DNA of 64,000 nt from Convolutriloba macropyga (GCF_964194025.1 NC_134470.1:12896001-12960000); one strand, 5' to 3'; positions 3,404 through 24,300 are shown, counted from the first letter of the stretch. Made by a program: numbers and translations. Notes: a model not told the origin generated them from the letters alone.

Positions 3404-4813
3404 TTAGCACCAAGTGAAGAAAGGCCGTTTCTCCTGATACGTTTCTCGGAACTCACTTCCGTCTCGTTCTGCTACATTGTGACTATCTTGGCACACTGTT
3501 TGCTTCTCCACAATTCGAAGCGGCAACTCCACCAAATCAGAAGGCGACATCCTTTTACTGAGAGCCTCACATAAGTTCATAATTTGACCTCTTAAAATTG
3601 ACATTTGCTTCTCGAACAAAGTTTTGCTGAAACCTTTATCGATTGAGAACAACAATTCAAGCTCAGCTATTAACGACTCCACGTTGTTCAGATCTCGAAT
3701 CATTGGAAGGAATGTCTGGATAGTTTCCTCAGAGAATGGGGTTTCAGCGTATGGCTGGAGCCAAGCCCACTGGTATGGATAAGCTCTCCAGGTATCCGGA
3801 TGTTTATAAGGAAAAGCAAGACCATTATCGATTGCAGCTACAGATATCTTGGGAGTACTGACTACGTTCCACTTAACCTTTTGATCACCACCTTCGTCTA
3901 TATCCTCATGCTCTTTCGTAGCGGTTGTTGAAATATAATCCGCTGGGGTTGTTTGCGGACTAGATTCCAGATCAACCTTGACCAACCAATTGTCATTTCC
4001 ACGATCCGTATTGCGTACGATGTAATCCAAAATAACCAACTTTTCGAACTTTAACTGGAACTCATGCATAGATTTGTTCGGTAACGTTTCGTACGAAAAA
4101 CGCTTTAAAATATCATCAGCGCTAGAATAGTCTTTCATAAAAAGTTGGAAAGATCCAACTTTTAGAGGTAGACCTAGACGCTTAAAACGGCGACCAATTA
4201 CGGGCGTTGTTGCCATTATTCCTCGTTTTGCCGTGCACTTAGCTTTTGTTATCTTGGAGTAAAAGAACGTTTCACTTGCTAACCAGACTATTCGCGTTTT
4301 AGGAACAATATTTAAACCTAGCCACTCGTCTACGATACTTGCTCCAGCTTCAGATAAATATCCCTGATTTTTTAAAAGGCAGTTACGACCAAAACAACAG
4401 GGACAAAACACACGTTGGCACCACTTTCCATATTTGGGATTTAAAGCACTATAAGGCTCCTCGCTTTTCGGTTTGAAAACAGCAATATTTTCTTGGCGAG
4501 TATTTTGAACAAAATAACTGCCACTTGAACCTTGTTTTATACGAATAGGATGAATTCCAATTGCAATTGCAAGCTCGGCTTCTCTAACTACATCTTCAAA
4601 CGCCGGATCATTTGGAAAACTATTTAAGTTGAGCATATCAGGTGGTTCTGGTTCTTCGCTTTCGTCGATTGTAGCAATGATTTCATGGGACCTCGAGTTT
4701 TCATAGTTTTCTGTATCGTCCACCTCTACTGTAAACATTTGAGGAGCCTGTTCGTCTGCACTTATCACATCTACCGTCTCTTCTGTCGACAAAAAGCCTA
4801 AATTTTCTGCCAT
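3404..4813 (-). CDS. PI4K2: Phosphatidylinositol 4-kinase type II, intronless CDS, 469 aa
   Basis: QGSSGSYF, FKPKSEEPY, palmitoylation-type CPCCFGR, RNTDRGNDNWL, AAIDNGLAFP, WRAYPYQWAWL, C-terminal PFFTWC. Confidence 0.96.
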   Translation of the reverse strand: MAENLGFLSTEETVDVISADEQAPQMFTVEVDDTENYENSRSHEIIATIDESEEPEPPDMLNLNSFPNDPAFEDVVREAELAIAIGIHPIRIKQGSSGSYFVQNTRQENIAVFKPKSEEPYSALNPKYGKWCQRVFCPCCFGRNCLLKNQGYLSEAGASIVDEWLGLNIVPKTRIVWLASETFFYSKITKAKCTAKRGIMATTPVIGRRFKRLGLPLKVGSFQLFMKDYSSADDILKRFSYETLPNKSMHEFQLKFEKLVILDYIVRNTDRGNDNWLVKVDLESSPQTTPADYISTTATKEHEDIDEGGDQKVKWNVVSTPKISVAAIDNGLAFPYKHPDTWRAYPYQWAWLQPYAETPFSEETIQTFLPMIRDLNNVESLIAELELLFSIDKGFSKTLFEKQMSILRGQIMNLCEALSKRMSPSDLVELPLRIVEKQTVCQDSHNVAERDGSEFRETYQEKRPFFTWC

Positions 4814-5240: not shown

Positions 5241-5997
5241 TCAAGCGAAAAAATCGTATAAAAAAAAGACCAACAGGACTAATATAATTGCTAAACTTCG
5301 TTTGAGAGCAATTAATAACGAAAGATTTAGGATTAATAATCCAATGATTCATAGAAAACCCCGCAATTCAAGTAAATAATCAATTTATATCAGCTAGGCA
5401 AGATTGAGTTCAACGCTCTGCAGTTGTTGCAGCCACACAAAATCAGAAAAGTGCATGGCTCTGATTCGTTGTACGGGATTTTGAATTGTTTAAAGTTGCT
5501 GTATTCAGCTTTTGTGATGAATGTCAAATAGAATATCTGATCTGAAGGAATCAGTATTGCGCACCGAACAAAAAATTAAGAACATCCTTCCCCAAGATTG
5601 GGTGAACATTGGGCTTCCCAGCTCTTTGTATTTCCAAAATTTATCAATAAAATGAAGATATGAGGACAAATGAAGAATAGTAGTAGTAGTAGCGAAGTCT
5701 TTAGGGATATACCATGGGTTTCCACCCTTTATATCATTAGTGAGTAAGCTGGGAATGTTGGTTACAGTTCGTGCATTGGCAGAGTATCCTCCAGGTACAT
5801 AGATTGGCTTCGTTGAACTTTTCGAATTACCAAAATTGCTGTGTTATTCGTGCTTTTCTGTTTTCTTTCGTTGTTAAGTCGATATGTTTACTCAGAATGT
5901 TGTGCAGTGTTCCGTTTCGTGTCCAGAAGTTATCGTCGGTCCTTTTGAGTCTGTAAAAGAAACCGATTTGTCAAATTAAAATTACTTCCAATACTTA

Positions 5998-6040
5998 AAA
6001 CAAACGTTTTCGAACTTTACGTTCATCGTCAGGTTAAAAC
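5998..6040 (-). ncRNA. Putative minimal type I hammerhead ribozyme in the Penelope 3' region
   Basis: Minus strand reads CTGACGA-T-GAAC gtaaa GTTC-GAAA-ACGTT: core boxes, 4-bp stem II, palindromic stem III. Confidence 0.65.
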
Positions 6041-6386
6041 TGTTTTACAAATTGTTAAAAGATAAAATGAATATGTATTTACATTTGTCTGAGATGACAA
6101 TTAAAACAATTCTAGGAAACATTCTAAAAAATTCAATCGAAAATTTTTCCTTATATACAATATTTAGCCTATTTACAACACATATTTACATCTGTTATCA
6201 ATTTACTTAAAAACATTCCTATTCCGGATTTTTCGATTTTGTCCATGTTCTTGTATTTTTAGGGTTATTCCGAATTTGCCCTAACCATAAGTATCCCTCT
6301 TGTGGAGGTTTTGCAAATTTCGTTTTGTCATGCACAAAATGTTTTTTGCCCTATGCATTCTCATTTAGTCAAAAATATGATTTGAA

Positions 6387-7147
6387 CTAATATTTTAGCG
6401 TGAGTTCCCTCCCCCTATATTCGTCGCGTGTGTTTAGTGCCGGCTTCAGCTTGCTGATATATATAGCTTCGATGATCATTAGTTTTTCTACTGACCGACA
6501 GGCGTCCAGAATTCTCCATTCAATGTCATTCGTGGCGCCACGACATTCAACTAGATGTTGACCCACCTGTGAATCCTTCTTTTGATGTTCTGTTATCCTT
6601 GTGGTAACATGCCGGCTTGTTTGCCCAACATAGATGGATCCGCATCCATTACATTTAATTTCATATACCACGTGGGATTTCAGATCTCTATCAAAGGATG
6701 ATTTCAAGGTGGGGAGGCACGATCTTAATTTTCGCGTTGTAAAAACTACTTGCAATTCGCATAGTTTCTTCAATTTGCTTGCGAAGTTTTGAGTGAGGTT
6801 GCCTCTGTATTGTAGAAAAATAGTTGGCTTATCATTAGATTTAGTCTTGCTTTTTTGATGCTCTTTTGGTGTTGTTCTTAATTGGTCTTTACCGCAACTT
6901 ATTATTTTTTCTAGAGTCTGATTCACAATTTTTGAAGACCATTCCTCTGGATATTGATTTTTGGTCCAGCAAGATTTGTTCTTTTCAAGAGCCTGATCGA
7001 AGGCCAACCAATTAGAGGTTGCATTAAAAACCCTGTGAACCGTCCCTTGAATCACATTTTTCTTATGTTGAAGCGGTGCACAGCTGCGAAATTTCAGTAT
7101 TATTCCAGTGTCAGTTGGTTTTTGATACCAATGACAGGTGATACCAA
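6387..7147 (-). CDS. Penelope RT thumb/linker + GIY-YIG endonuclease (5' truncated, open frame)
   Basis: WYQKPTDTG, VVYEIKCNGCGSIYVGQTSRHVTTRITEH, IIEAIYISKLKPALN. Confidence 0.85.
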
Positions 7148-7170
7148 TGACAGGTGATACCAATGACAGG
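7123..7170. repeat. 3 x 16-bp tandem repeat (tgataccaatgacagg) at the Penelope 5' truncation junction
   Basis: Read directly from the sequence. Confidence 0.9.
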
Positions 7171-9859
7171 TGAGTCTGGTTTTGGGAATGTTGAAGCTGG
7201 AGTTGGAGCCTTGTCTGGTTCGTTCGTTGGTATTACGTGATTGTATTCTGATGTTTTCATGTCATACTTGTGGTCAGTGATGGCGCAGAACAGTAGGAGA
7301 CTGTGGAGTTCGAAGTACATTGAGAGTGGCAGTAAGTTGAGTTCTTTGAGTCTTTCTTTATAGGGAATTGTGTTGTTTAGAATCCACTGTGTTGCACTTT
7401 TCTGCATTCTTTCGATGTTTGACAAGTCTGTTTTGATGGGGTACCAGAACTCACATGCGTACGATATGACGGGTACCACATATCCTGTGTATGCGTTTAG
7501 TTTGGCTTCAGTCGTTGACTTAAAAAAAGTTACGCTTGAGGAAACACTATGATTTCAGGGCTTTAGTTCGACGCAGATTACAGTTTTCTTTCCAGGAGAG
7601 GTCGTTCGAGATTAGGACACCAAGGTCTTTTTGAACTTTAACAGGTTTGACAGCGACTTCGTTCGTTTTGGCAACTGACTGTTTTTTGAAGTGTACCAGA
7701 CTACATTTATCATCATGGAGATTCATTTTGTTTGCGACACACCAGTTATGTAAACTTATTAGGTCACTTACTAGGAGTTCATGAGATGTGCTTAACAGAT
7801 TGTAGTCATCGGCATATCCGAAGTATTCACTTTCACTTGCAACAGTTGGGAGGTCATTTATGTAGATTAAAAAGAGTAGAGGACCCAGTAGGGACCCTTG
7901 TGGGACCCCGCTAGTGACATCACGGAATTCAGATCTTGGGTTGTTTATTTTCACACATTGTTTTCTATTGTCTAAATAATTGGCAATTAGTTTAAGGGCT
8001 GTTCCACCTATTCCCATTTTGTGGATTTTCAAAAGCAGGAGATTGTGAGGAACCTTGTCGAAGGCTTTTTCGAAGTCTAAGTAGAAGACCGTTAGTTCAT
8101 CAATTGCCGACGAATCGTTGAGCAGGTATACTTTTTCGAGGAAGCAGATAAGTTGTATAATGGCTGAGCGACCGTCTCTAAATTCAAATTGAGAGTCGTG
8201 AAGTTTTTGCCTTACTACTGGGTATAACCAGTCAGCGATGACTTTTTCTAGGACTTTTGACGGGCAACAGAGGCAGTTAATGGGTCTATATTTGGTTACG
8301 TCGCTTTTATCACCGTCTTTGTAGATTGGAGTTATTTCGCTTTCTTTCCAGTATTGTGGGTATACACCTTTGTTGAAGCAGGTTTGAAAGATGACAGTTA
8401 ATGATTTAGCCAGTCTGGTTGCAAGTTGTTTTAGGGTCTCGTTTCCTATTCGATCCGCTCTTTTTGCCTTTTTTGATTTAAGAGAACTAAGTATTTCCGT
8501 GACTTGTTTTTCGCAGCAAGTTATTTTGTTGAATGTATTTGGCCCGAAGTCAACGTTTGTATTGTTTGTTTTTTAATTAAAAACACTTTGGAAGTATTGG
8601 TTAAATAAATTTGCCTTTCCTTCATCATTTTTTGCTACTTTGTTTTGTAAATGCATTTCATGTGGGTACGGTGGCGCTTTTTTAATGGATCTCAGATAGG
8701 CTTGGATCTTACTGAATCCCCTTGTTCTGAAAATCTCGTTTTCGTAGTCGGCTTGGTCGTTACAAGGTTCGATTTCAATTTTGCTTTCAAGATCAAGAAT
8801 ATTTTGCAGGTTTAGGGGTTGGGCTTTTCTGGCTTCTTTGCGTTTGAGTGTGTTAAGTTGGTTGATCAGGTGGGAGGTAGGTTTCAAGATCCATGGAGGG
8901 AGGTAAGATTGTTGGCTAGTAATTCTTGGTACGTTTTCGGTAAACAGTTTGTTGAACCATAGGTACCATTGATTGGTGATTTCGTCTACATTGCTGTAAC
9001 AGTAAGGTTCAAAGGGATTATCGACAACTGTTTGATTAAAATTCTCCCAGTTAGTCCGAGAGGTTGCATATTTGACATTTTTATGGTGTTTCTCCGTTGC
9101 ATTATTGAAGGTTAACAGGGATGAGAATGCTGGGTGGTCTGGGCACTTTTTTAAATTGACTGAATAGTTAAGTAAGTGTGGTGTCAATTGTTGAATTAAG
9201 CCAATACTCAGGTTCATCTATTAGGAAGACGTCTAACTGCGGTTTGCTGCCAAGTATGCATTGGAAGTCAAATTTTTGTTCACAGTTGAGATTCGCTAGT
9301 TGATCAGTGACAGTGTTTTCATATTCCTTTATGGACTGCATTAACCCCCAAAATATATGCACAAAATTATTATCTCCAGTTATTATAGAGCTTGAGACTT
9401 TCAATTGTTTACGTTTGGTTGTGAGACTTGAAAGGAATTGCGCGCATTTTTCAGGTGGCCATCTGTAGGGACTGTTTTTTGGAGGGTTATAGATACAGCT
9501 GATCAACAATTTTTGTGTTTTGGTTCTGTCAGTTAGTAAAACAGTTATCGCGTCTTCAAATGTATGGTAAAGTGTCAGTTGTTTAGCCTTGATGTCTCTC
9601 CGTACCGCAATGAGTACTCCTCTGTGTTTAGAGACATTTCTGTTGAACTTCTGTCATTTTTGAATATTTGGAAGTTATTGAGGAAAAGAGACTCGTTCGG
9701 GACAGATTTTGTTAGACAAGTCTCACTGAGGCATAAGACATCGTAGTTTTGGGGTAAAATTGCATTTGCAAGAGTGAAACGTCTTTGCAGGTCGAGGACG
9801 CTGTGTACGTTGAAAGTGAGTAGAGTAATTTGTTCGGTTCTGTTTTCGTTGGTGTTTAG

Positions 9860-10793
9860 TCACCGTCCCGTATCCAGGGCGGCCTCATCCCAGGTGTTGC
9901 TTTGATCATCGTAGTGTAGTAGTTTCAGGTTTTGGACCATGACCTTGTTTCTTGGTATTGGTATTCCCGATTCGATGTATTCTCGTCTTTTTTTAAGTAG
10001 ATCGTTTTCCAACAGTTGTTCTTCTTTTGATAGTTCTCTGCTAGGGCACACTTTTTTATCATAGTTCCGCAATTTGCCAAGAGATAGTAAGAGCAGTTTT
10101 CTGTTCCTGTCATTACTGAGTTTGACTATGATTGTTCTGTTGTATGTTTCAATTCGCCTACAATTTTCGATATCAGAAACAACATTTAAGACTTTTAGTA
10201 TGTTTTCAATCTCAACTGTATCATGTTAAGCACGTTTTCTAGCATTGGTGTCTTTTAGCTCGGGTATTCCACGTACATGTACGCCGCTGGAGTGATCGTT
10301 TATGGGAGGTTCGGTTTTGGTTTGACTTTTTTGGTCACAATGTCTCCTAGGTCGTTGAGCTTACTTTTAACAGCGCTCTTAAAGGATGTTATCTCATTTT
10401 TCAGTTGATTACCGACAGTTTCTTTAAACAAAAATTTTCATTTCCTCCTGATTTTCGTTGATTTTGTCGATTTTGTTTTGGCTGATGATAGCGTCCAGGA
10501 CGACGTCCCGTTTGTTGGTTTTTACACAGTTGTTGCATATAAAAGTTGCGTAAAAGTATATTCAAATTTATCTCCTGGAGAGTGTTGATGACGGTGCCAG
10601 ATAGCTGAGTACATTGGGTGGTCATATGCATAATGTTTTCGCATGATACGCACCGAAAGAGTGTATCTTTTTTAGCAATGCCAGCCTTGCATGTATTACA
10701 GTTGATTGTAAGGCCACTTGCAATTTTCGATTTTAAACTTACTTCTTTGTTTGTTATCGTTTTCGATCGACTTTTTGTTTGAGGCGTTTCCGT
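9860..10793 (-). pseudogene. LINE-A ORF1 with N-terminal PHD finger, disrupted
   Basis: CNTC...CVSC..MH...C...CNNC (C4HC3) across frameshifts; C-terminus RELSKEEQLLENDLLKKRREYI. Confidence 0.75.
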
Positions 10794-11001
10794 ATTACTT
10801 CGCTACTACTCGAGAGTTGTTAGGATCGTAGCTGTTTCACTAGTTATTTCTCGCTAGGAGAGATTGTAGTGAAGCAGCGCTTGCTTGCTGTTATCCTTTG
10901 TTTATCGCGAGGAGAGACAGCGGTATAACCACAAACAGTTAAGTAGAAACTAACTATTGTTACCTGGGTGGTTCTTGCTGGGAGAGCCGGAGGAAACGGA
11001 G

Positions 11002-11597
11002 TTAGTAGTTGCAGTTGCAGTTCTTGAATGGGCACTCGAAGTTGTCTAGGTGTCCTTCCTCGTTGTACTTGTTCGAGTAATTCTTGAACAACACTCGTTT
11101 CTTCAGGATCGCTTTCACTCCGCTGATCCCGGAGTTGCTAATGTGCACGTCGTCGTCGCCGATGTGTATCTCACTGAAAATTTCTTCTGAAACACCACGA
11201 TATTTCCAGTTTCTGCTTGTCTTACTTTTGTTGTCCAATAGTTTATTAGTTTACGAAGAACGTTCACGTTAGCTACCACGGTGGGATATACCAAGGATGA
11301 AAACTTTTTTGGCTAGCTTGCACTGCTGTTCGCCCAGAAAGTCTAACTCGTCCACTACCTGTTGCTTGGACAGTGAAGATGGGAGGGTACCGTTGTATAA
11401 GTCGTTGCCGCCAATAAAAACAACAAATATGTTGAACTTATCTTTGATGAGAAGAATTGTTGAGCGTGGGCAATGTGAGCTCCAGGAATGGACAAGATGT
11501 TGAAGTTGGGGAACTCGATGTTTCGGGCTTGTGAATCTGCGAGGAGCAGGTTCCTCGAAGAAGAAGTCCTTAGAGTGTGGAATCGTCTGTTGGACAT
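11002..11597 (-). pseudogene. LINE-A ORF0, SGNH/GDSL esterase-like, disrupted
   Basis: Blocks LLLADSQ (I), SIPGA (II), VFIGGND (III, after a frameshift), DDDVH (V); own stop at 11002. Confidence 0.75.
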
Positions 11598-11972
11598 CAA
11601 AGCATCAATCTCACCCGTCAAAGCTAGGAACGAAGGGACTTAGAACTCGTTCATGTTGAAAAGGATTCTTGTTCCTAGCTCAAAAAGTCTGAAATTGAAT
11701 GATTTGACGAAGGGAAAAGGCAATCTATTTAATAAGTTTATAATGAACAAATGAATAATGAACAAAAGAGTATAAAGGCTACGCCATCACAATACTGCAC
11801 ACACAAACCAGTCTGAAAATCATCTGCGCCACTCACGCTGTTCTGTCACATGCAGTAAAAAGCATACTAAATAAAAAAACAGGGAAATCGGATCTTATTG
11901 GTCAGCTCAAAGGATGCATTTTATTTTTAACCCCCCCCCCCGCAGCACGCGCAATATTTTGACATAACCGTG

Positions 11973-12339
11973 CTGTTGTTGCTGTGACTTTTCGGGATCA
12001 AGCCGAGGGGATTGCTCCCATAGAAGTTTTGGTCTTGGTTCCACTATTTTCTGCAATTGGAGCAATCATAGAAAACGGTTCATGTACACACTACTCTTCC
12101 GTTGAAGTTCAACATCAGACGGTCCCACATAAATGACAGAATACATCTTTTGAGTCCCAAAGGCTAGGAAGAGTCTATCTCTTCAGGCAGATTGTTGGCA
12201 ACTTTGGCAGTTCGAAAGTAAAAGTTCTCTCTGAATTTCTCGGTTCTCAGTTGTGGAATTTTGAATAATCTGCTTTTAACTCTACAATATTGGTGTTCAT
12301 AGGTTTCTATCAATGGAAGTGTGTTTTTTTATCATGGTA
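11973..12339 (-). mobile_element. 5'-truncated 3' fragment of LINE family B
   Basis: Reverse complement matches ~21050-21420, including gcaatcccctcggcttgat.ccgaaaagtca and a (caa)-like tail. Confidence 0.85.
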
Positions 12340-12797
12340 ATTGGCAGGTGATTTGTAATTGTGGGTGCAAAACGCACTGGAGGGCGGGTGGGTGTGCACA
12401 CCGAAAAGATCCAGGAATTCCGATAAAGAAAATTGAATAATCCTTAAAAAAGAACTTTAGTTCCCACTCCTACTTTTTGAGTGGAACATTCTGCCAGCGG
12501 ATCCTTTTATGTTAACACGCTTGTTGCCGATCGAAATCTATTGCACGCAGAGAAACAACTGGTATACAAACTTAAACAAACTGTTGAATTTCCCAGTTCA
12601 AAAGAAAAAGACTTGGGAAGTCGATTTTACATGATGATGCAAGTAATTGAAAGTTGCATAGAATATTGCCTAGAAAAGTTATCATATTATTTAATGATAA
12701 CCAAGTTAAACGTTTTTTTATGCCCATGCAGTCAAACCAACTGAAATTGGAGACACAGACTGAACTTACCATATCACTTCAAGTTGACCAACATCTT

Positions 12798-15700
12798 TAC
12801 AAAAACAAAATAGAGCTTTTTAGCGGAAGAAGACAAATTTATCGGCGTTCAGCGATACTTCAAGTCCATAACGAAGTCAAAAACAATTCCCTCCAAAAAT
12901 TTTTGGGATCACCAAAAAAGAACAAAATCTGCCACACTTCATTTGTTTAACGAAAATTTCAAGTCATGTTCACGCAGGAAATGTGGTAAGATCGGCCATT
13001 CTGTTGTGCCAAGTTTGACCAGCAAAATGAGGTCCAATTTTTTTGTATAACGACTATCACAAAATGACAGCAAAAGAACCACACAAACTGTCCACAGAGA
13101 ACCACAAAAAATCACAAAAGTATCTAAACTTCACAAAATTCTTCTGAAACAAATTGTCTCAGCCCTGAAGACATCATTTAAAAAGTTTAAACAACAGAAA
13201 TTTTAATTTTTGATTCAACAAAACATTAAAAAGAGCTCTAAAAACGATACAATTTACAAAATGATTAAATAGTGTTTTTCCGATAGACTGTTCTGGGATA
13301 GCCGTGGTTATCCACTAAATGTTTATCCTTGGTGCAAGTTCATTGTCGCATGCGATTCGATCTTTACCCTGGTTTATCCGAAAAAGACTAAATCGTCACA
13401 TCCTTGCCATACACAGTTTGTGCTTCAATCAGAAAAAGAACAACAAACGGAAAACTGTTCATACTCCGGAGATCTCTGCGTCGTCGTAAGGACATTATTA
13501 TCTGGCACGATACGCTCAATAAATCGATGACTCAACATAGAAGTAACAACTTCACTCAGGTGTCGCCAGAAAGATTGAGGAAGATCTTATTGTCGTTTGG
13601 CAATCAGGTACAAGGGGTCGTCCATTGCACCCGTGAAGGTGCTCCAGATATTTGGGATCATATCAAAACCTTGAGAACCCAAGGTTTCCAAGTAGCAAAC
13701 ATTGTTCGTGGAATTCTGCCGAAGCAAAAATCTAACGATCCTGAAATCCTGATAGAGTATATTCAGTTGCATCAGAAACCTCTGTAGGAACTTCGAACGT
13801 TAGCAGCTGTGAAGAGAGTCAACTGTGAATTGAATCGCTTTGCCCAGAAAAAGAAAAGACTATCCAAAACTCGTCGCGAAAAATCACTTCGCGACCAAAA
13901 AATCACTAACAGCAAATAACTCTTGGTTCTCAGTTTATCATTTGATATAACTTGAAAACTCATCTTGTGCTACTTCGGACCGGTTTGAGTACAAAAACAA
14001 AGTAGAACTTTTTAGAGGAAGAAGACAATTTTATCGGCGTTCAGCGATACTTCAAGTCCATAACGAAGTCAAAGACAATTCCTTCCAAAAATTTTTGGGA
14101 TCACCAAAACAGAACCAAATCTGCCACAGTACACTTGCTTAACAAAAATTTCAAGCCATGTTCACGCAGGAAATGTGGTAAGATCGGCCATTCTGTTGTG
14201 CCAAATTTGACCAACAAAATGAGGTCCAATTTTTTTTTATAACGACTATCACAAAATGACAACAAAAGAACCACAAAAACTGTCCACAAAGAACCACAAA
14301 AGAACCACAAAAGTATCTAAACTTCACAAAATTCTTCTGAAACAAATTGTCTAAGCCCTGAAGATATCATTTAAAAAATTTAAACAACAGAAATTTTATT
14401 TTTTGATTCACCAAAACATTAAAAAGAGCTCTAAAAATGGTGCTAATTTACAAAAATTATACTATTTACAAAATGATTTAATAGTGTTTTTCAGATAGAC
14501 TGTTTTGGTATAGCCGTGGTTATCCCCTAAATGTTTATCCTTGGTGCTAGTTCATTGTCGCATGCGATTTGATCTTTACCCTGGTTTATCGAAAAAGACT
14601 AAATCGTCACATCCTTGCCATACACAGTTTGTGCTTCAATCAGAAAAAGAACAACAAACGGAAAACTGTTCATACTCCGGAGATCTCTGCGTCGTCGTAA
14701 GGACATTATTATCTGGCACGATACGCTCAATAAATCGATGACTCAACATAGAAGTAACAACTTCACTCAGGTGTCGCCAGAAAGATTGAGGAAGATCTTA
14801 TTGTCGTTTGGCAATCAGGTACAAGGGGTCGTCCATTGCACCCGTGAAGGTGCTCCAGATATTTGGGATCATATCAAAACCTTGAGAACCCAAGGTTTCC
14901 AAGTAGCAAACATTGTTCGTGGAATTCTGCCGAAGCAAAAATCTAACGATCCTGAAATCCTGATAGAGTATATTCAGTTGCATCAGAAACCTCTGTAGGA
15001 ACTTCGAACGTTAGCAGCTGTGAAGAGAGTCAACTGTGAATTGAATCGCTTTGCCCAGAAAAAGAAAAGACTATCCAAAACTCGTCGCGAAAAATCACTT
15101 CGCGACCAAAAAATCACTAACAGCAAATAACTCTTGGTTCTCAGTTTATCATTTGATATAACTTGAAAACTCATCTTGTGCTACTTCGGACCGGTTTGAG
15201 TACAAAAACAAAGTAGAACTTTTTAGAGGAAGAAGACAATTTTATCGGCGTTCAGCGATACTTCAAGTCCATAACGAAGTCAAAGACAATTCCTTCCAAA
15301 AATTTTTGGGATCACCAAAACAGAACCAAATCTGCCACAGTACACTTGCTTAACAAAAATTTCAAGCCATGTTCACGCAGGAAATGTGGTAAGATCGGCC
15401 ATTCTGTTGTGCCAAATTTGACCAACAAAATGAGGTCCAATTTTTTTTTATAACGACTATCACAAAATGACAACAAAAGAACCACAAAAACTGTCCACAA
15501 AGAACCACAAAAGAACCACAAAAGTATCTAAACTTCACAAAATTCTTCTGAAACAAATTGTCTAAGCCCTGAAGATATCATTTAAAAAATTTAAACAACA
15601 GAAATTTTATTTTTTGATTCACCAAAACATTAAAAAGAGCTCTAAAAATGGTGCTAATTTACAAAAATTATACTATTTACAAAATGATTTAATAGTGTTT

Positions 15701-17619
15701 TTCAGATAGACTGTTTTGGTATAGCCGTGGTTATCCCCTAAATGTTTATCCTTGGTGCTAGTTCATTGTCGCATGCGATTTGATCTTTACCCTGGTTTAT
15801 CGAAAAAGACTAAATCGTCACATCCTTGCCATACACAGTTTGTGCTTCAATCAGAAAAAGAACAACAAACGGAAAACTGTTCATACTCCGGAGATCTCTG
15901 CGTCGTCGTAAGGACATTATTATCTGGCACGATACGCTCAATAAATCGATGACTCAACATAGAAGTAACAACTTCACTCAGGTGTCGCCAGAAAGATTGA
16001 GGAAGATCTTATTGTCGTTTGGCAATCAGGTACAAGGGGTCGTCCATTGCACCCGTGAAGGTGCTCCAGATATTTGGGATCATATCAAAACCTTGAGAAC
16101 CCAAGGTTTCCAAGTAGCAAACATTGTTCGTGGAATTCTGCCGAAGCAAAAATCTAACGATCCTGAAATCCTGATAGAGTATATTCAGTTGCATCAGAAA
16201 CCTCTGTAGGAACTTCGAACGTTAGCAGCTGTGAAGAGAGTCAACTGTGAATTGAATCGCTTTGCCCAGAAAAAGAAAAGACTATCCAAAACTCGTCGCG
16301 AAAAATCACTTCGCGACCAAAAAATCACTAACAGCAAATAACTCTTGGTTCTCAGTTTATCATTTGATATAACTTGAAAACTCATCTTGTGCTACTTCGG
16401 ACCGGTTTGAGTACAAAAACAAAGTAGAACTTTTCAGAGGAAGAAGACAATTTTATCGGCGTTCAGCGATACTTCAAGTCCATAACGAAGTCAAAGACAA
16501 TTCCTTCCAAAAATTTTTGGGATCACCAAAACAGAACCAAATCTGCCACAGTACACTTGCTTAACAAAAATTTCAAGCCATGTTCACGCAGGAAATGTGG
16601 TAAGATCGGCCATTCTGTTGTGCCAAATTTGACCAACAAAATGAGGTCCAATTTTTTTTTATAACGACTATCACAAAATGACAACAAAAGAACCACAAAA
16701 ACTGTCCACAAAGAACCACAAAAGAACCACAAAAGTATCTAAACTTCACAAAATTCTTCTGAAACAAATTGTCTAAGCCCTGAAGATATCATTTAAAAAA
16801 TTTAAACAACAGAAATTTTATTTTTTGATTCACCAAAACATTAAAAAGAGCTCTAAAAATGGTGCTAATTTACAAAAATTATACTATTTACAAAATGATT
16901 TAATAGTGTTTTTCAGATAGACTGTTTTGGTATAGCCGTGGTTATCCCCTAAATGTTTATCCTTGGTGCTAGTTCATTGTCGCATGCGATTTGATCTTTA
17001 CCCTGGTTTATCGAAAAAGACTAAATCGTCACATCCTTGCCATACACAGTTTGTGCTTCAATCAGAAAAAGAACAACAAACGGAAAACTGTTCATACTCC
17101 GGAGATCTCTGCGTCGTCGTAAGGACATTATTATCTGGCACGATACGCTCAATAAATCGATGACTCAACATAGAAGTAACAACTTCACTCAGGTGTCGCC
17201 AGAAAGATTGAGGAGTATCTTATTGTCGTTTGGCAACCAGGTACAAGGGGTCGTCCAATGCACCCGTGAAGGTGCTCCAGATATTGGGGATCATATTAAA
17301 ACCTTGAGAACCCAAGTTTTCCAAGTAGCAAACATTGTTCGTGGAATTCTGCCGAAGAAAAATCTAACGATCCTGAATTCCTGACAGAGTATCTTCAGTT
17401 GCATCAGAAACCTCTGTACGAACCTCGAACGTTAGCAGCTGTGAAGAGAGTCAACTGTGAATTGAATCGCTTTGCCCAGAAAAAGAAAAGAGTATCTAAA
17501 GCTCTTCGGGAAAAATCATTTCGCGACCAAAAAACCACTAAGAGCAAATAACTCTTGGTTCTCAGTTTATCATTTGATATAGCTTGAAAACTCATCTTGT
17601 GCTACTTTGATTTGAGTAC
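12798..17619 (+). repeat. Tandem array of 4 x ~1211 bp units (flank + LINE-B 5' end/ORF0)
   Basis: The same ORF starts at 13404, 14615, 15826 and 17037 (period 1211); junctions gagtac|aaaaacaaa. Confidence 0.95.
13319..13919 (+). pseudogene. LINE-B ORF0, divergent SGNH-like (first array copy; others offset by ~1211)
   Basis: MFILGASSL..LAIHSL..(frameshift)..IIIWHDTLN..IQLHQ; order and spacing parallel the SGNH blocks. Confidence 0.5.
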
Positions 17620-17672
17620 CTGGGCCTTAGTATCACGTGCTGAATTTATGGGCTGAAGTATTGTGGGGCAAA

Positions 17673-18556
17673 ATGTCTCGCAACTCCGAGGGGAAATGCA
17701 AAACATGTAAAAGTCAAGTCAAAATAGGAGAAGCTGTATACAACTGTATCTCTTGTGGATTGAAGATGCACATGGAATGTGCTGGTTTGGAAGAGGACGC
17801 CATAAAGGTGCTCTCAAGTCTGCTTAGTAATCTTTTACTCCTGTGTAACGAATGCGTGAATAAAGGGAAGAAAGATCAAGTCATCCAGAAATCCACAAAA
17901 GAAAACGTGGAAGGAAAAAATGACGACAAGCTCAACGAAAGTCTGAAAAAGATGGAGAATTTCTAATCAAACGGATCGATCAGAAAATCGAAGCTGCTCT
18001 GGCAGGCAGCGATGCGAAGACTGAGAAATCCATGGAGAAAATCCTTGAAGAGAAGATAGTTAATTAAGTTCTGAATGTGCAAAAAACGTCTGACGAACAG
18101 AAGGAAGTACATCAAAATATCTTGAAAACCTTCAGAATTCAAGGAATTCCAGAAGACCTAGAAAAAACAAAAGATGAGATCTTGATTTCACTAAATGAGA
18201 ACAAAAAAGATATATTTGATGCAATTGAAATCAACACGACGGTTGAAAACGTGAGAAGATTTGGAAGGTTTGATAAAGAGCGCTCGAAGCCAAGGAGCGT
18301 TCTAGTAACTGTTCCCAACTGTTGGGACACACGGAGGATTTTAACTAAAGCTAGAGAAAAAAGGAAACTACTTTCTGACCGCGGTTTCTTTGTACTTCCA
18401 TCACTAACTAAGGCAGAATCCGAAAAAGAGAATATGTGTCTTATGAAGATATCTGAGATGATAGAGAACAGAACACCTGCAAACCAAATCAAAAATAGAA
18501 ACTTTGAACTGCTTCACAACGGTACAAAAGTCGATTTGGAAGAACCATCCGATTGA
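17673..18556 (+). pseudogene. LINE-B ORF1 (PHD finger, coiled coil, RRM-like C-terminal half), disrupted
   Basis: CKTC..CISC..MHMEC..CNEC; FRIQGIPE, RRFGRFDKERSKPRSVLV. Confidence 0.85.
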
Positions 18557-21345
18557 CTAGAAAATTTGAATCTGATGTTAGTAAATGCTCGTAGTCTTTT
18601 GAATTTTGATAGATGAATTAAGTTTGCAAATGCTGTGATGACCTGTAGATACACCATTGTCATCGTTACGGAAACATGGTGGAATAAAGACGTGGAAGAC
18701 TCTGAAATTACGCTTCCTGTGTATATCTTACTCAATTGTGAAAGAGCTGTCAACAAACACAGAGGTGTTTTGATAGCTATCCAGAGCATCATCACTGCAA
18801 AACGAATCAGTGACGATCTCCCGGTTGGATGTATTCTCACTATCGTTGACATACAACTGAAGAAACATCTTGTATGTGTCATCTACGATCCGCCACTGGG
18901 TAGCGCCTACAGATACATTTTAGCTGATTTTGAACAGGTACTCAGAGTTATTGAAGAATTCAAGCAATACGCATTTTTGATTTTCGGAGACTTCAACCTA
19001 ACAAAGGTCAACTGGAGCCTAAATCACAGTGCCGATGAGTACGAGCAATCGGTGATTGAAATTTTGAAAGACATAACTTTCACCAAATAGTGGACTTTAG
19101 TACTTGTGGAAAGAACACAATAGATATTGTGTTTGAACGGAAAGTGGAAAACACGACTGCCAAGATTGATCTTGTCTTCAGACACATGCTTGACGTTTCA
19201 GATCACGAACCGATATTAATATCGCTTAAAGAACACAAAGAAGAACGCAAAACCCATGTCTCCATTTATTTCAGCTTTGCAACGCCAATTGCGATGCGAT
19301 GCTGGAAGAAATGACCTTGTTCCCTTTCGAGGCTACATGCTTCACTAACATCGATCGCATGGTTGAAGAGTTTTATGATTACATTAAATCCTTAATAGAG
19401 AAACATAGTCCCAAACGTACTCAACATAGACAGCTTGTGCCTCCTTGGTTTTCTAAGGAGACCTCTCATACTATGAAGATGCTGAGCACTGCTCGGCGAG
19501 CCGAACGCAAGAAACCAAACAGCTTAGTGCTATCGGAAAAAGTTTTGAAACTAGCAAAATATGTTACTGGAACTTGCAGAAGAATTTAGGTGTCAGTATC
19601 AACAGAAACTTGTGACCACTCGTGATACGACAGTGATCTTCAAGCACTTAAAGAGTCTTAGAAAAACAGTAACTCAACCCAGAATACTTTCTCTAGAGGA
19701 AGAGACTGCCGATTCCACTCAACAGAAAGTAGGCCTGCTAAATAGGTATTTTCAGTCTGTATTTTCTGAGAAGACTGAAAACACGGTAGCCGATGACCTT
19801 CCGCACCCAAACCTAATAAGAGCAATCTTAACAAACCTTGATGTCTCAAAAACTCGAGGTCCAGATAACATTCCCTCCTGTTTCTTGAAGCAACTGGCTG
19901 AACCGCTCAGTTTATTCTTGAGCGCAGTCTTTAGGAACATCAAAAGATGAGGAAAAATCTCGAACTGTTGGAAAATTGGTGCTGAGTCGCCCATCCATAA
20001 TAAAGGCTGCAGAGCAAGTGTCAAAAATCACAGACCAGTGACTTTGCTGTATATAGTTTCGAAAGTACTCAAACGATGTATGTATGATCCGATCAAAAAG
20101 CAATTCTTGGATCATTTAATAACCAGTCAACATGGATTTGTGAAAAAACGATCCGTTGTGTCGAACATGCTCTATTTCTAGAACGACGTTCAAATTGCGT
20201 TGGCAGGAAACCCAAATTCGGTTTTTTCCTCATACACCGACTTCTCAAAAGCATTCGATAGGTCCCGCATCCTGAATTTTTGATCAAAGTAAGTTCAATT
20301 GGAGTGGGCGGGTTTGTACATAGTCTTCTCAAGGACTATTTATGTAATCCTACACAGTTCGTAAGATGTGATGGTGTCAGGTCGGACCTTCTACAAGTAT
20401 TAATTGGTGTTCCGCAGGGGTCCATTTTTGGCCCCTTACTCTTCTGCATCTTCACAAATGATTTGCCAACTTCCTTGATATTCAGCACCCCATATCTCTA
20501 TGCGGATGACGCAAAGTTCTTGTTTATTGACAAAAGTAACCAAGAAATTCAAAAAGAAGTTTACAGAAACTCACTTTGGGTATCCAGGAACAGAATGTCA
20601 CTTGCAACTGAAAAATGTTGTTATATAGCATTTAAGGGACAGTCCATCAGCCTTACGATGAATAACACTACAATAGAGCAATCCACAAAGGTGACTGACT
20701 GGGGAGTGCAGCTTACAGGTACCCTTAAAGCGTCAAAGCACCTCGAGTCCAGGCTTGCGAAAGCTAATCGAACTTTTGGTTTTCTGAAGAGAAACTTATC
20801 GAAGAATGTGGAAACGAGAGTGAAAAACTGTGCTTACAAATCCCTTTTTCTACTTTTGATTACTTTTGCTTCAGGCAGTTGTCACCCATCGCGTGGAAGT
20901 ATGAGACTAATGGAATGCTTTCAAAAACGTGCGTTGAAATGGATAACGGGCTATAGGAATGCGTCGTACTTCAAAAACATGGTATTCCTAAGATTACTTC
21001 CGATTCCTATGTTTTTGCAACTCAATGATTTACTTCTATTGTCTAGACTGTACCATGATAAAGAAAACATACTTTCGTTGATACAAACCTATGAACACCA
21101 ATATGGTAGAGTTAAAAGCAGATTATTCAAAATTCCAAAACCGAGAACCGAGAATTTCAAAGAGAACTTTTACTTTCGAACTGCCAAAACTGCCAACAAT
21201 CTGCCTGAAGAGATAGACTTTTGGGTGTCAAAAGACGTATTCTGTCATTCATGTGGGACCGTCTGATGTTGAACTTCAACGAAAGAGTAGTGTGTACATG
21301 GACCATTTTCTGAGATTGCTCCGATTGCAGAAAATGGTGGAATCA
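18557..21345 (+). pseudogene. LINE-B ORF2 (APE + RT), multiple stops and frameshifts
   Basis: Fragments 18635-19090, 19090-19314, 19299-19589, 19561-19950, 20280-21266; ends VVCTWTIF*DCSDC. Confidence 0.9.
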
Positions 21346-24300
21346 AAAACCAAAACTTTTATTAGAGCAATCCCCTCGGCTTGATGCCGAAAAGTCAAAA
21401 GAACAACAAAAAACAACAACAATAAGAAAAAAATGGCAAACCAGAACAAAAAGGGATAAGTTGAAGAAAGCTATTACCCTTTTTTTAGAAAATTAATTCG
21501 AAAGTCAAAACAGCCATTAGCTCTCTACCAAAATCAGTTATTTATGTTCAGTTGTTTATCTATAGTTGGCCACTGAGACCTTTAGTTACACAATATATGG
21601 CATATGACAACAAAAATCAACAGCAAATAAGGGGCAAATAAAAAAAACTCTATCAGTTTCTGCAAGAGAACGGTGTCGCAGCCCTTCAAACCATATGTTA
21701 TAAAAACAAGAATTATGTGAAGTTCAAAATTTTGTAAAGCTTCGTACAATTAGATTGTTAAATAATGTGACAATTTACAAAAGAAACAAAAACAACAGCA
21801 AAAATGGGCAATTATGCACAAAAATCAGAAAATTTTGTTTGAAAACTTGTAGTGGCAAAAGCAAGAAGACCTTCTGTTAAAACAATCAGCCTCAAAATTA
21901 GTTTTTATTCTATACGGAGGAGCAGTTGACCTGTACTTACTGAGAATAGGCAATATGTTGACTTGAATATCAGAAAAAATTGACAAGTTCAAAAAATCAC
22001 AGAAATTTTCTTAAAACAAATTCATTCAATAACAAAAGAGACATTATGTAACAACCGAATGAAAAAAAAAGGTTCATTTGCACCTATCCACAGATCTTTG
22101 AGTGGTCATACTTAAAAATCAGACTGCCAAAAGAATAAGAATTGAAGGCAAAGGACAAGAATTCAGTTAAATTTAACTAAATCTCTTCCTCATATAAAAA
22201 CCCTTTGGTTCTCTGAAAACAAACTGTATCTACATTCGGCCTCAAATTTACGAATGTAGCTGTCATTAACGAAGCCGTGAAAAAAATGTTGTCTGTAATT
22301 AAGATTAAAAGAACAAAAGCAAAATATTTTGAAAGGCAGGATCAAAATAAAAATTAAAAAGTCTCTGATTCTAAGAGTCCATGATATTATCGAACATCTC
22401 CCTGATTTTTTCGCGCGCCCTGCAAACCGATCAAGTGTTCCAAATATTTGCGAATTAGACCTATTGTTGAGTGGAATTCTTCAAATATTGAAAGAAAAGA
22501 TTCATTTTGTATAATTATCGAGTAAAATCTGCAGAAAACGACAAGGTTTTAATTCCAGAAGCTTTCATACGGCGCCTAATTGCAACTAGCGCTCTTTTTG
22601 AATTTAGGAAGTCTGTGTTAAAGTTTCTAGTCACTAAGTCAAACTTTAGTCAAACTAAGTCAAACTATGGCAAACTTTAACAAAGTGGACGAAAAAAGCA
22701 TATTTTGTGCCATTTTTGATGAAAAAAGATTGAATTTTGATAATTTTATCAACAATTTTTGCCAAAAAAACTGCAATGAAACAATTCAGCAACGCCAGTG
22801 AGTATATGAAAAACCCATTTGAGTATATAGTTCTTCTCTCCCCACTAAAGTGGGGGTCGGAACAATAAACACTTCGGATTTTATAATCAAGGATTTCGAG
22901 CACTTTTTTTACATAAATGACTGATTATAGAGACGCCTTTTTCCGAGTTATGAGCTGTTCCTATTCCAATCATCTTGGTCGTTTTTTGTGCTTCTTTCGA
23001 TGTTCATAATATTGTTCACAATTTTTTTATGTTTATCACGCATTTCATCATCCCAATTTGCTTGGTTCGATGTTTCTGCGGATTTGTAGATTGTTTTTTA
23101 CATATTGGATGCAAAAATTAAATCATACCATCTACTCAGACGTCTGCATTTCAAACACCAAACTATTGGTCAAGACTTTGAAACTTAGGACATTTTGTTA
23201 AAGTTTTTGGTTTTTTGATTCTTTAAGACTTTTTACTGAAATCCAAAAAAATCTTAAAACTTTTCATTTTCATCTGTTTTTTTGCCAAAAAATTGATAAT
23301 TAAGTCAGTACTGTTTATGCAAGTTTTCTTGAAAAATGTGATTGCTCTTAAAAATTTTCAAAGAGTGCTCAACAATTTTATGAAGTTTGTCCAACGCGAA
23401 GGGCATTTTGCCAAAAAAGCTACACACTCTTGAGTTCCAACATTTCCTAAAACTATCACCTTAACCCTAGTTTTGTATTTAAAATGGCTTTTATGATACC
23501 ACTTAATCTGCATGAGAAACTCAATTGCTGCCTGCAGCCCTCCGTATGTATTCTTTTAGTCCGACTCGAAGGCACAAAATTTTTGATAAAGTGCTTAAGT
23601 ATAGCACCAAAGAAACAAAACACCTGAAATAGAATATGAGGAACTATTATCCACCTGCAAATCAATTAAAACTTCCAAACTTCCAAAAAAGAGTGAATTT
23701 GAAAAAAACAATAGAAAGCAGACAGAGACAAGAACAAAAATTAGTCTCAAATACTCTCAATGCACTATATATCGAAAAGTGTTTAATGGAGAGAAAATGC
23801 AATTTATTGGAGTAAACTTCTTGATATATGCAGAGCAAATCAATAATCATGAAATGTGAGAGAAGAGAAAGCTTGAACAAAGTATCAAACCGATACTGAA
23901 GTAAATCGATTTCTTTGCCACAGAATAAAAAATTTCAACTATATTCTGCGAGAAATGTATACTGTCATGAAAGGGACAAACACAAGGAAACAAGTACAAA
24001 AAAATTCGAATAATTGGAAAAATCTACCCAAAGTTCTAGAGTATTTCATAAATTTTTGGCTATTTTCATCACAATGCAAGGAATGTTTGGCACTCAAATT
24101 AAATTGAAAACATTCCACTGAGAAAATTTGGCTCATTAAACCTGAAAATCATTTAAAATGTGAAACTTTTAAGATTTGAAAAAATATCGAAAATGTTTCC
24201 AACTTTGGTACCAATTCTGGTTTCCTGCTAAGTTACCAGATATCAAAATCAACAACTCTAAAATTTTTTATGATTTGTGTTGTTTCTGAATCTTTAATCT

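Follow-up and report, generated by a model that had tools for sequence, protein, structure and literature searches.

A predicted stand-alone SGNH esterase cistron and an AUG-poor leader in LINE retrotransposons of Convolutriloba macropyga

We analysed a 64,000-nt stretch of the Convolutriloba macropyga genome (GCF_964194025.1 NC_134470.1:12896001-12960000), referred to as the window; positions are window positions unless another locus is named. Two long interspersed elements (LINEs), LINE-A on the minus strand and LINE-B on the plus strand, lie head to head within it, and each carries an additional open reading frame, ORF0, upstream of ORF1 and ORF2 (Table 1). At least seven genome copies of LINE-A share a 5' end at 11737-11741, in agreement with contigs of other sequencing runs, which diverge from the element at 11732-11738. 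The 3' tail of LINE-A, GCTACTACTACTACTA, is a (TAC)n repeat that terminates near 5678. Copies of the LINE-B family begin at 16898-16915 and continue through ORF1 into ORF2, and the 3' end lies near 21425, with a (CAA)n-like tail. The target-site duplications, TTCATTTGT for LINE-A and AAAATG for LINE-B, are candidates only. Matches to Exo_endo_phos, the apurinic/apyrimidinic endonuclease (APE) domain, and to RVT_1, the reverse transcriptase (RT) domain, are found in both families (RVT_1 of LINE-A at 8032-7547). The ORF1 of LINE-B matches C1_2 with 27 bits and PHD with E 1e-3. The presence of APE and RT in ORF2, together with a microsatellite-like rather than poly(A) tail, suggests that both elements are CR1/L2-like LINEs of the Jockey superfamily. 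Their ORF1 proteins are 30% identical over 292 residues and their RT segments 33% identical; judged by these values, LINE-A and LINE-B are related but clearly distinct families.

The ORF0 of LINE-A runs from an ATG at 11597-11595 to a stop codon at 11004-11002 and contains the motifs LLLADSQ, IPGA, FIGGNDL and DDVH. Two lesions disrupt the frame in the window copy: a 1-nt deletion lies near 11448, and the codon at 11271-11269 is an in-frame stop. Intact frames of 212 codons, or 198 counted from the Met, end at the same stop in at least five other copies (L003, L004, L005, L008 and L014). In a motif scan of eleven copies in which the 3' end of ORF0 could be read, the stop was found in the same place in ten; the remaining copy, L011, lost it by a frameshift. 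The ORF1 AUG is located 283 nt beyond the ORF0 stop, mostly in a different frame from ORF0. The ORF1 frame itself opens at 10802, and its start codon at 10718 is ATG in other copies and AGT in the window. All 14 near-full matches to this ORF0 in the genome continue into ORF1 and ORF2. Pairwise dN/dS values between intact copies range from 0.33 to 1.04 and are lowest in the most divergent pairs, which is only mildly informative for copies this young.

A first-pass annotation of this sequence had placed the two ORF0 frames at 11597-11002 and 16953-17551 and described each as a separate first cistron ahead of ORF1 in its element. Both sets of coordinates proved exact, and the LINE-A motifs and the stop codons of both frames were recovered; the window copies are broken and intact ones are found elsewhere. 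In both families the ORF0 stop is conserved and further stops precede ORF1, and linkage was observed in the LINE-A copies described above and in at least 12 of 21 LINE-B loci, which extend without interruption from their 5' end as far as ORF2. The LINE-A spacer had been given as about 200 bp, which falls short of the 283 nt from stop to AUG.

To what protein family does this cistron belong? The AlphaFold (AF2) model of the LINE-A ORF0 product (ORF0-A) has a mean predicted local distance difference test score (pLDDT) of 92.5 and a predicted template modelling score (pTM) of 0.90, and all of its fold rows in the atlas are GDSL. Nearly all of the top 50 Foldseek matches are SGNH enzymes, among them PAF-AH Ib alpha, sialate O-acetylesterase, OatA and TesA, with E values down to 5e-6. 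Superposition on SGNH hydrolases with VIA-align gives a Z score of 17.5 and a root-mean-square deviation of 2.3 Å over 161 residues. In an alignment of 27 A-type homologues that are 24-55% identical, the catalytic residues S22, N65, D149 and H152 are each conserved in at least 90% of the sequences, and the blocks read xDSQ (I), LPG(A/G) (II), FIGGNDL (III) and D.VHL (V). On the modelled fold, LINE-A ORF0 encodes an esterase of the SGNH type as a free protein of about 198 aa, in which the Ser/Gly/Asn/Asp-x-x-His active site is intact. The SGNH fold that the first-pass annotation had expected is borne out here. Esterase activity and a lipid role are predictions from the fold and these residues only. 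The Pfam models Lipase_GDSL and Lipase_GDSL_2 match ORF0-A only below their gathering scores (E 1e-4), and the esterase of the zebrafish element ZfL2-1 (PDB 4c1b) is not significant against the 27-sequence profile (E 0.46, 13 bits) and lies outside the top 50 structural matches. Because the Pfam models fall under their cut-offs and 4c1b reaches only E 0.46, we consider ORF0-A a distant branch of the SGNH family.

Homologues of ORF0-A were collected by searching a profile against 1.84 billion cluster representatives. The profile matched 176 clusters (defined at 50% identity), and for 89 of these the E value was 1e-10 or lower; the best are proteins of 195-215 aa that align from their own Met. 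Among the 150 clusters listed, the longest homologue is 320 aa; therefore no ORF0-ORF1 fusion was seen among these matches, which agrees with the first-pass view of an unfused cistron. Most A-type proteins also end in a GH-x(5-6)-C-x(4)-C-x-C tail that follows the SGNH domain (window 11002-11060, minus strand; alignment A3, columns 260-305). This tail could be a small zinc-binding motif; in the model, the last ~10 residues of ORF0-A have low confidence (pLDDT 69).

LINE-B ORF0 is interrupted in the window by a CGA>TGA nonsense change near 16992 and by three deletions. Intact copies of 201 codons are present elsewhere in the genome (for example L025, L031 and L037), with the motifs GASS, PG, IIIWHDTLNNS and LQLHQ and a basic tail. 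In the intact copy L031, ORF0, spacer and ORF1 are in one frame, which contains five stops including that of ORF0. A profile search of the genome with the LINE-B protein (ORF0-B) detected over 100 further matches at E ~1e-40, all in intact frames 210-250 codons long. The protein P0216, found in another assembly by an alignment search, is 39% identical to ORF0-B and keeps FILGASSL, LPGL, DIIIWHD..NNSLT.HR, GAP, EY.QLHQK and the basic tail. Two word-based searches returned only relatives of at least 76% identity, and a metagenome scan one at 80%. These data show that LINE-B ORF0 is a separate cistron in the same position as in LINE-A, and that its product, about 201 aa long, is conserved and very basic.

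The first-pass annotation had considered both ORF0s SGNH esterase-like. This view stood for LINE-A, by fold and catalytic residues, and is tentative for LINE-B, where several results weigh against it. The AF2 model of ORF0-B, built from a 10-sequence alignment, has a pLDDT of 36; searches with ORF0-B using HMMER, Pfam (GDSL) and the PDB gave no SGNH match; and HMMER detects no similarity between the A-type and B-type profiles. Neither ORF0-B nor P0216 contains Gly-x-Asn-Asp or an Asp three residues ahead of a His. These observations count in favour of an ORF0-B unrelated to SGNH enzymes, a basic, probably nucleic-acid-binding protein that would have occupied the 5' cistron slot. An orthologous ORF0 would be expected to be still detectable, because ORF1 and RT remain 30-33% identical between the families and the A-type profile reaches relatives at 24% identity. 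Common ancestry is nevertheless favoured by the size of ORF0-B, its place in the element and its AUG-free design, all as in the A-type. Its motifs also follow the SGNH order with similar spacing: an N-terminal GASS, PG, a hydrophobic strand followed by WHD..NN, and LHQ at residue 153, compared with H152 of the A-type. The candidate blocks shared with P0216 are IIIWHD(T/A)(L/I)NNS and Y(L/Y)QLHQK, and the Ser of GASS is kept. With hhalign, the same in-register alignment, covering blocks II-III and the next helix, was obtained three times at E 0.02-0.05, and in a language-model comparison the neighbours of P0216 are clusters of ~200 aa that bear GDSL domains, with scores of 0.87-0.88; both are leads only. 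Taken together, the chances are about even that LINE-B ORF0 is a diverged SGNH derivative without the catalytic signatures of blocks III and V, and an unrelated origin is a real contender, to which we give a little less than an even chance. Two further matches of ORF0-B were taken as chance: one of its C-terminus to NF-YA (E 0.033), which is absent in P0216, and those to LepB_GAP_N (E 1e-3).

Homologue contexts in other assemblies, four with an A-type ORF0 (L046, L047, L079 and L080) and one with the B-type protein P0216 (L082), extend the distribution of the cistron beyond these two families (Table 1). In the contexts sampled, A-type ORF0 precedes ORF1 proteins with a PHD finger, ORF1 proteins that lack it, and the gag of a long terminal repeat (LTR) element. 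In this last element, L046, the esterase frame starts 19 nt past the first LTR, and the LTR has TG..CA ends and an AATAAA signal. The B-type protein heads a BEL/Pao element. These contexts show that, outside this genome, both types of ORF0 are also found at the head of LTR retrotransposons; ORF0 thus behaves like an accessory cistron that is portable between 5' ends, in keeping with the earlier description of it as interchangeable. The family is abundant and unannotated: no fewer than 1,585 A-type and 2,331 B-type candidates were counted in the present genome, and none of the 115 members read, from ten clusters with 137 members, carries a name or accession.

Table 1. Features of the window and of the ORF0-bearing elements in other assemblies (the latter in coordinates of their own loci).
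Feature	Coordinates	Strand	Description
LINE-A copy	5678..11741	-	5' untranslated region (UTR), ORF0, spacer, ORF1, ORF2, (TAC)n tail
LINE-A 5' UTR	11598..11741	-	144 nt
LINE-A ORF0	11002..11597	-	predicted SGNH esterase gene, stand-alone, 198 codons; broken in window copy
LINE-A ORF0-ORF1 spacer	10719..11001	-	283 nt, without ATG
LINE-A ORF1	9860..10718	-	PHD-like zinc finger, coiled coil, RRM-like part
Penelope-like element fragment	5954..7170	-	inside LINE-A ORF2; C-terminal RT part and GIY-YIG (Pfam E 2.4e-6)
Inverted LINE-B 3'-end fragment	11974..12330	-	between the two elements; 87-92% complementary to 21061-21408
Tandem array	12798..17622	+	four 1,211-bp units; the last continues into full LINE-B
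LINE-B copy	16898..21425	+	55-nt 5' UTR, ORF0, spacer, ORF1, ORF2, (CAA)n-like tail
LINE-B ORF0	16953..17551	+	201 codons in intact copies; stop 17549-17551; broken in window
LINE-B ORF0-ORF1 spacer	17552..17672	+	121 nt
LINE-B ORF1	17673..18556	+	C4HC3 PHD-like finger, coiled coil, RRM-like part
L047			ORF0 of 201 aa; ORF1 of 456 aa (coiled coil, RRM-like part, no PHD); ORF2 with APE and RT
L079			layout like L047; downstream RVT_1 only, APE not detected
L080			ORF0, PHD-type ORF1, APE/RT
L046	6867-11061		LTR element: A-type ORF0, gag, RT-RNaseH-integrase, flanked by 116-nt LTRs
L082	6790-16204		BEL/Pao element of 9.4 kb, 540-bp LTRs; P0216 (B-type) is the first ORF, ahead of gag

How the cistron downstream of ORF0 is expressed was addressed by AUG statistics on ten elements, which include LINE-A, LINE-B, three LINEs of other assemblies and both LTR elements. 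The interval between the AUGs of ORF0 and of the next cistron is 669-1,211 nt long and contains 0-1 ATG in eight of the ten elements and four in the other two. Dinucleotide-preserving shuffles of the same intervals contain on average 5-12 ATG, and numbers as low as those observed occur in at most 0.2% of shuffles. As further controls, the antisense triplet CAT is found 9-20 times in the interval, and ATG frequencies in ORF1 and ORF2 are normal in all ten elements. The window copy of LINE-A has no ATG in 876 nt, compared with 17 in its ORF1. Internal Met is scarce in the ORF0 proteins, amounting to 0.55% of A-type residues and being absent from seven of eight B-type proteins. The ORF0 AUG itself has a pyrimidine at -3 in eight elements and lacks G at +4 in nine, whereas in every one of the ten a purine occupies -3 of the next cistron's AUG. 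A weak ORF0 AUG, a stretch poor in AUG in all frames and a next AUG in good context together make up what, by analogy, is the classical signature of leaky scanning. These sequence statistics suggest that ORF1 is translated by leaky scanning, and the purine found at -3 of the ORF0 AUG in two of the ten elements counts against it. One RNA would carry three cistrons: ORF0, an ORF1 with PHD-like finger, coiled coil and RRM-like part, and an ORF2 for endonuclease and RT; the weak ORF0 AUG would often be bypassed, and scanning ribosomes would meet almost no AUG before the good-context AUG of ORF1. LINE-A also has a two-codon upstream frame, ATG CTT TGA, at 11605-11597 on the minus strand, whose stop overlaps the ORF0 AUG (UGAUG); it is also present in L002, L003 and L004.

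The spacers between ORF0 and the next cistron contain small hairpins that could serve a different route. In LINE-A, three copies of CTCTCCNNGCGANAA (10972-10986, 10902-10916 and 10848-10862) can each form a 4-bp hairpin; the whole window has four matches to this sequence, three of them in the LINE-A spacer, and 0.11 are expected. The spacer of L046 (7592-7731) has two copies of GAUACUUNUUUAAGUAUC, that of L080 (7646-7945) three hairpin copies and that of L079 (7613-8025) four to five. The spacer of L047 (655-717) has a single hairpin with a fold z-score of -4.1, and across spacers the RNA-fold z-scores are mixed, from -0.6 to -4.1. Every A-type spacer examined thus has one to five short hairpins, mostly reiterated, and it counts against leaky scanning that they could serve as an internal ribosome entry site (IRES) or in reinitiation instead. 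ORF1 would then be reached by termination-reinitiation or through an IRES composed of the repeated hairpins, and the lack of AUGs would be incidental or have some other function. Neither mechanism, however, requires a coding region of 600 nt and the spacer behind it to be cleared of AUG in all three frames, which is seen in all ten elements. Moreover, several spacers have ordinary fold z-scores (-0.6 to -1.5) and the hairpin sequence differs from element to element. We regard this explanation as unlikely, and a structured spacer element may still contribute to ORF1 expression.

We also considered that ORF0 might be the N-terminal domain of ORF1p, joined to it by readthrough, frameshifting or splicing, or separated from it only by a stop that is an artefact of copy decay. 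The known LINE esterase belongs to ORF1p (PMC3905857), and in LINE-B and L047 ORF0 and ORF1 share a frame. Such a fusion is at odds with the ORF0 stop, which is kept in the ten LINE-A copies noted above and recurs in divergent homologues of five or more additional samples, and with the further in-frame stops between ORF0 and ORF1, of which there are at least two to five. The spacers range in length from 63 to 413 nt and do not hold the two ORFs in a constant relative frame, and none of the 150 homologue clusters listed, of 176, is long enough for a fusion. No joint that skips the spacer was found in contigs of four runs, weak evidence from short repeat unitigs only. A fused ORF0-ORF1 product is therefore very improbable. 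Overall, we think it probable that these are three-cistron LINEs in which ORF0-A is a free SGNH esterase, ORF0 is portable and ORF1 is reached by leaky scanning. A broader interpretation is more tentative, and we hold it slightly less likely than its opposite: ORF0 and its AUG-free leader would be a portable 5' expression module that moved repeatedly among LINEs and LTR retrotransposons, BEL/Pao included, with form A catalytic and form B basic and catalytically dead. The module would make the elements leaky-scanning polycistrons, the first such translation strategy described for a LINE.

The remainder of the window holds several rearranged copies. ORF2 of LINE-A is interrupted by a fragment of a Penelope-like element (PLE), and the genome copy L016 is contiguous across 5954-7170, without this insert. 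Upstream of LINE-B lies a tandem array whose unit consists of 483 bp of upstream flank and the first ~728 bp of LINE-B, comprising the 5' UTR, ORF0 and the greater part of the spacer; between units 2 and 3 the identity is 100%. As a result the window carries four broken copies of ORF0-B, starting at ~13319, 14531, 15742 and 16953. A second, independent array on another chromosome (L038/L040/L041, G000:C11:49988542-49992317) joins LINE-B nt 1-1011 to an unrelated 477-bp flank with a period of 1,488 bp, and further clustered LINE-B 5' fragments are found on C15 and C12. Assembly collapse or expansion may be the source of such arrays. Downstream of ORF0, ORF1 and ORF2 are in the same frame with a single stop between them, at 9860-9862 (minus strand) and 18554-18556 (plus strand) in the window and also in L013 and L047; in L047 the ORF2 ATG is two codons past the ORF1 stop. 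Outside the LINEs, an intact single-exon ORF of 469 aa at 3404-4813 (minus strand) resembles, by eye, type II phosphatidylinositol 4-kinase, and it is spanned whole by contigs from several runs of the same organism.

The closest known parallel is ZfL2-1 of zebrafish, which has the esterase-type (type IV) ORF1p of CR1/L2/RTEX LINEs (PDB 4c1b; Kapitonov & Jurka 2003; Schneider et al. 2013, PMC3905857). As the first-pass annotation had stated, the LINE esterase has been described as a domain of ORF1p; it belongs to an architectural class without RNA-binding domains (PMC3905857). Within the Jockey superfamily a survey found it only in vertebrate CR1 and L2 subgroups, and there only as part of ORF1 (Metcalfe & Casane 2014, PMC4120745). 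LINE-A and ZfL2-1 both have an SGNH esterase upstream of ORF2, with conserved catalytic residues and PAF-AH-like structural neighbours, and a membrane or lipid role in the ribonucleoprotein cycle is presumed for both. In ZfL2-1, however, the esterase stands behind a coiled coil within ORF1p and there is no RRM-type ORF1, whereas LINE-A has a free protein of ~198 aa in its own cistron and an RRM-type ORF1 as well. The conserved C-terminal GH..C..CxC motif of the A-type is a further difference from ZfL2-1. We suggest that the LINE-A esterase would do the membrane- or lipid-related job of the ZfL2-1-type ORF1p esterase domain, with the RNA-binding ORF1 kept besides.

The layout of ORF1 in LINE-A and LINE-B is that of type IIC (N-terminal PHD followed by coiled coil, RRM and C-terminal domain), found in CR1 subgroup 5 and L2 subgroup 6 (PMC4120745), and the tails are microsatellite-like, as in CR1-like elements. 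Unlike LINE-A and LINE-B, type IIC elements have no cistron described upstream of ORF1 (PMC4120745). A GDSL esterase is encoded by ORF3 of the Vesta LTR elements and the Athena/Terminon PLEs of bdelloid rotifers (Rodriguez et al. 2017, PMC5408684). Like ORF0-A, it is a stand-alone GDSL/SGNH ORF with intact catalytic residues that is common to unrelated retroelement classes, a likeness of features. The rotifer gene is, however, the 3' ORF of its elements, whereas ORF0 is the first cistron, ahead of ORF1 or gag, and has the AUG-free design. Our literature search found no LINE in which an esterase has its own 5' cistron next to an ORF1 of the RRM type, nor one with an AUG-free first cistron (most subscription journals and Repbase Reports lay outside the search).

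Plant pararetroviruses such as rice tungro bacilliform virus use leaky scanning on a polycistronic RNA, in which a weak first AUG and a long AUG-free stretch allow downstream cistrons to be translated from the same capped RNA. That case concerns a viral pregenomic RNA; here the RNA would be that of a LINE, with leaky scanning predicted from its nucleotide sequence.

In current schemes, the LINE esterase counts as one kind of ORF1p, which stands in place of the RNA-binding kind. In LINE-A both functions would coexist as separate cistrons, and because they coexist the esterase appears to be an add-on accessory enzyme and not a Gag-like substitute. The ORF0 family is large, unannotated and spread across retroelement classes, and it bears on the exchange of modules between retroelements. 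The AUG desert, in turn, would offer a directly testable answer to how three proteins are expressed from one eukaryotic LINE RNA.

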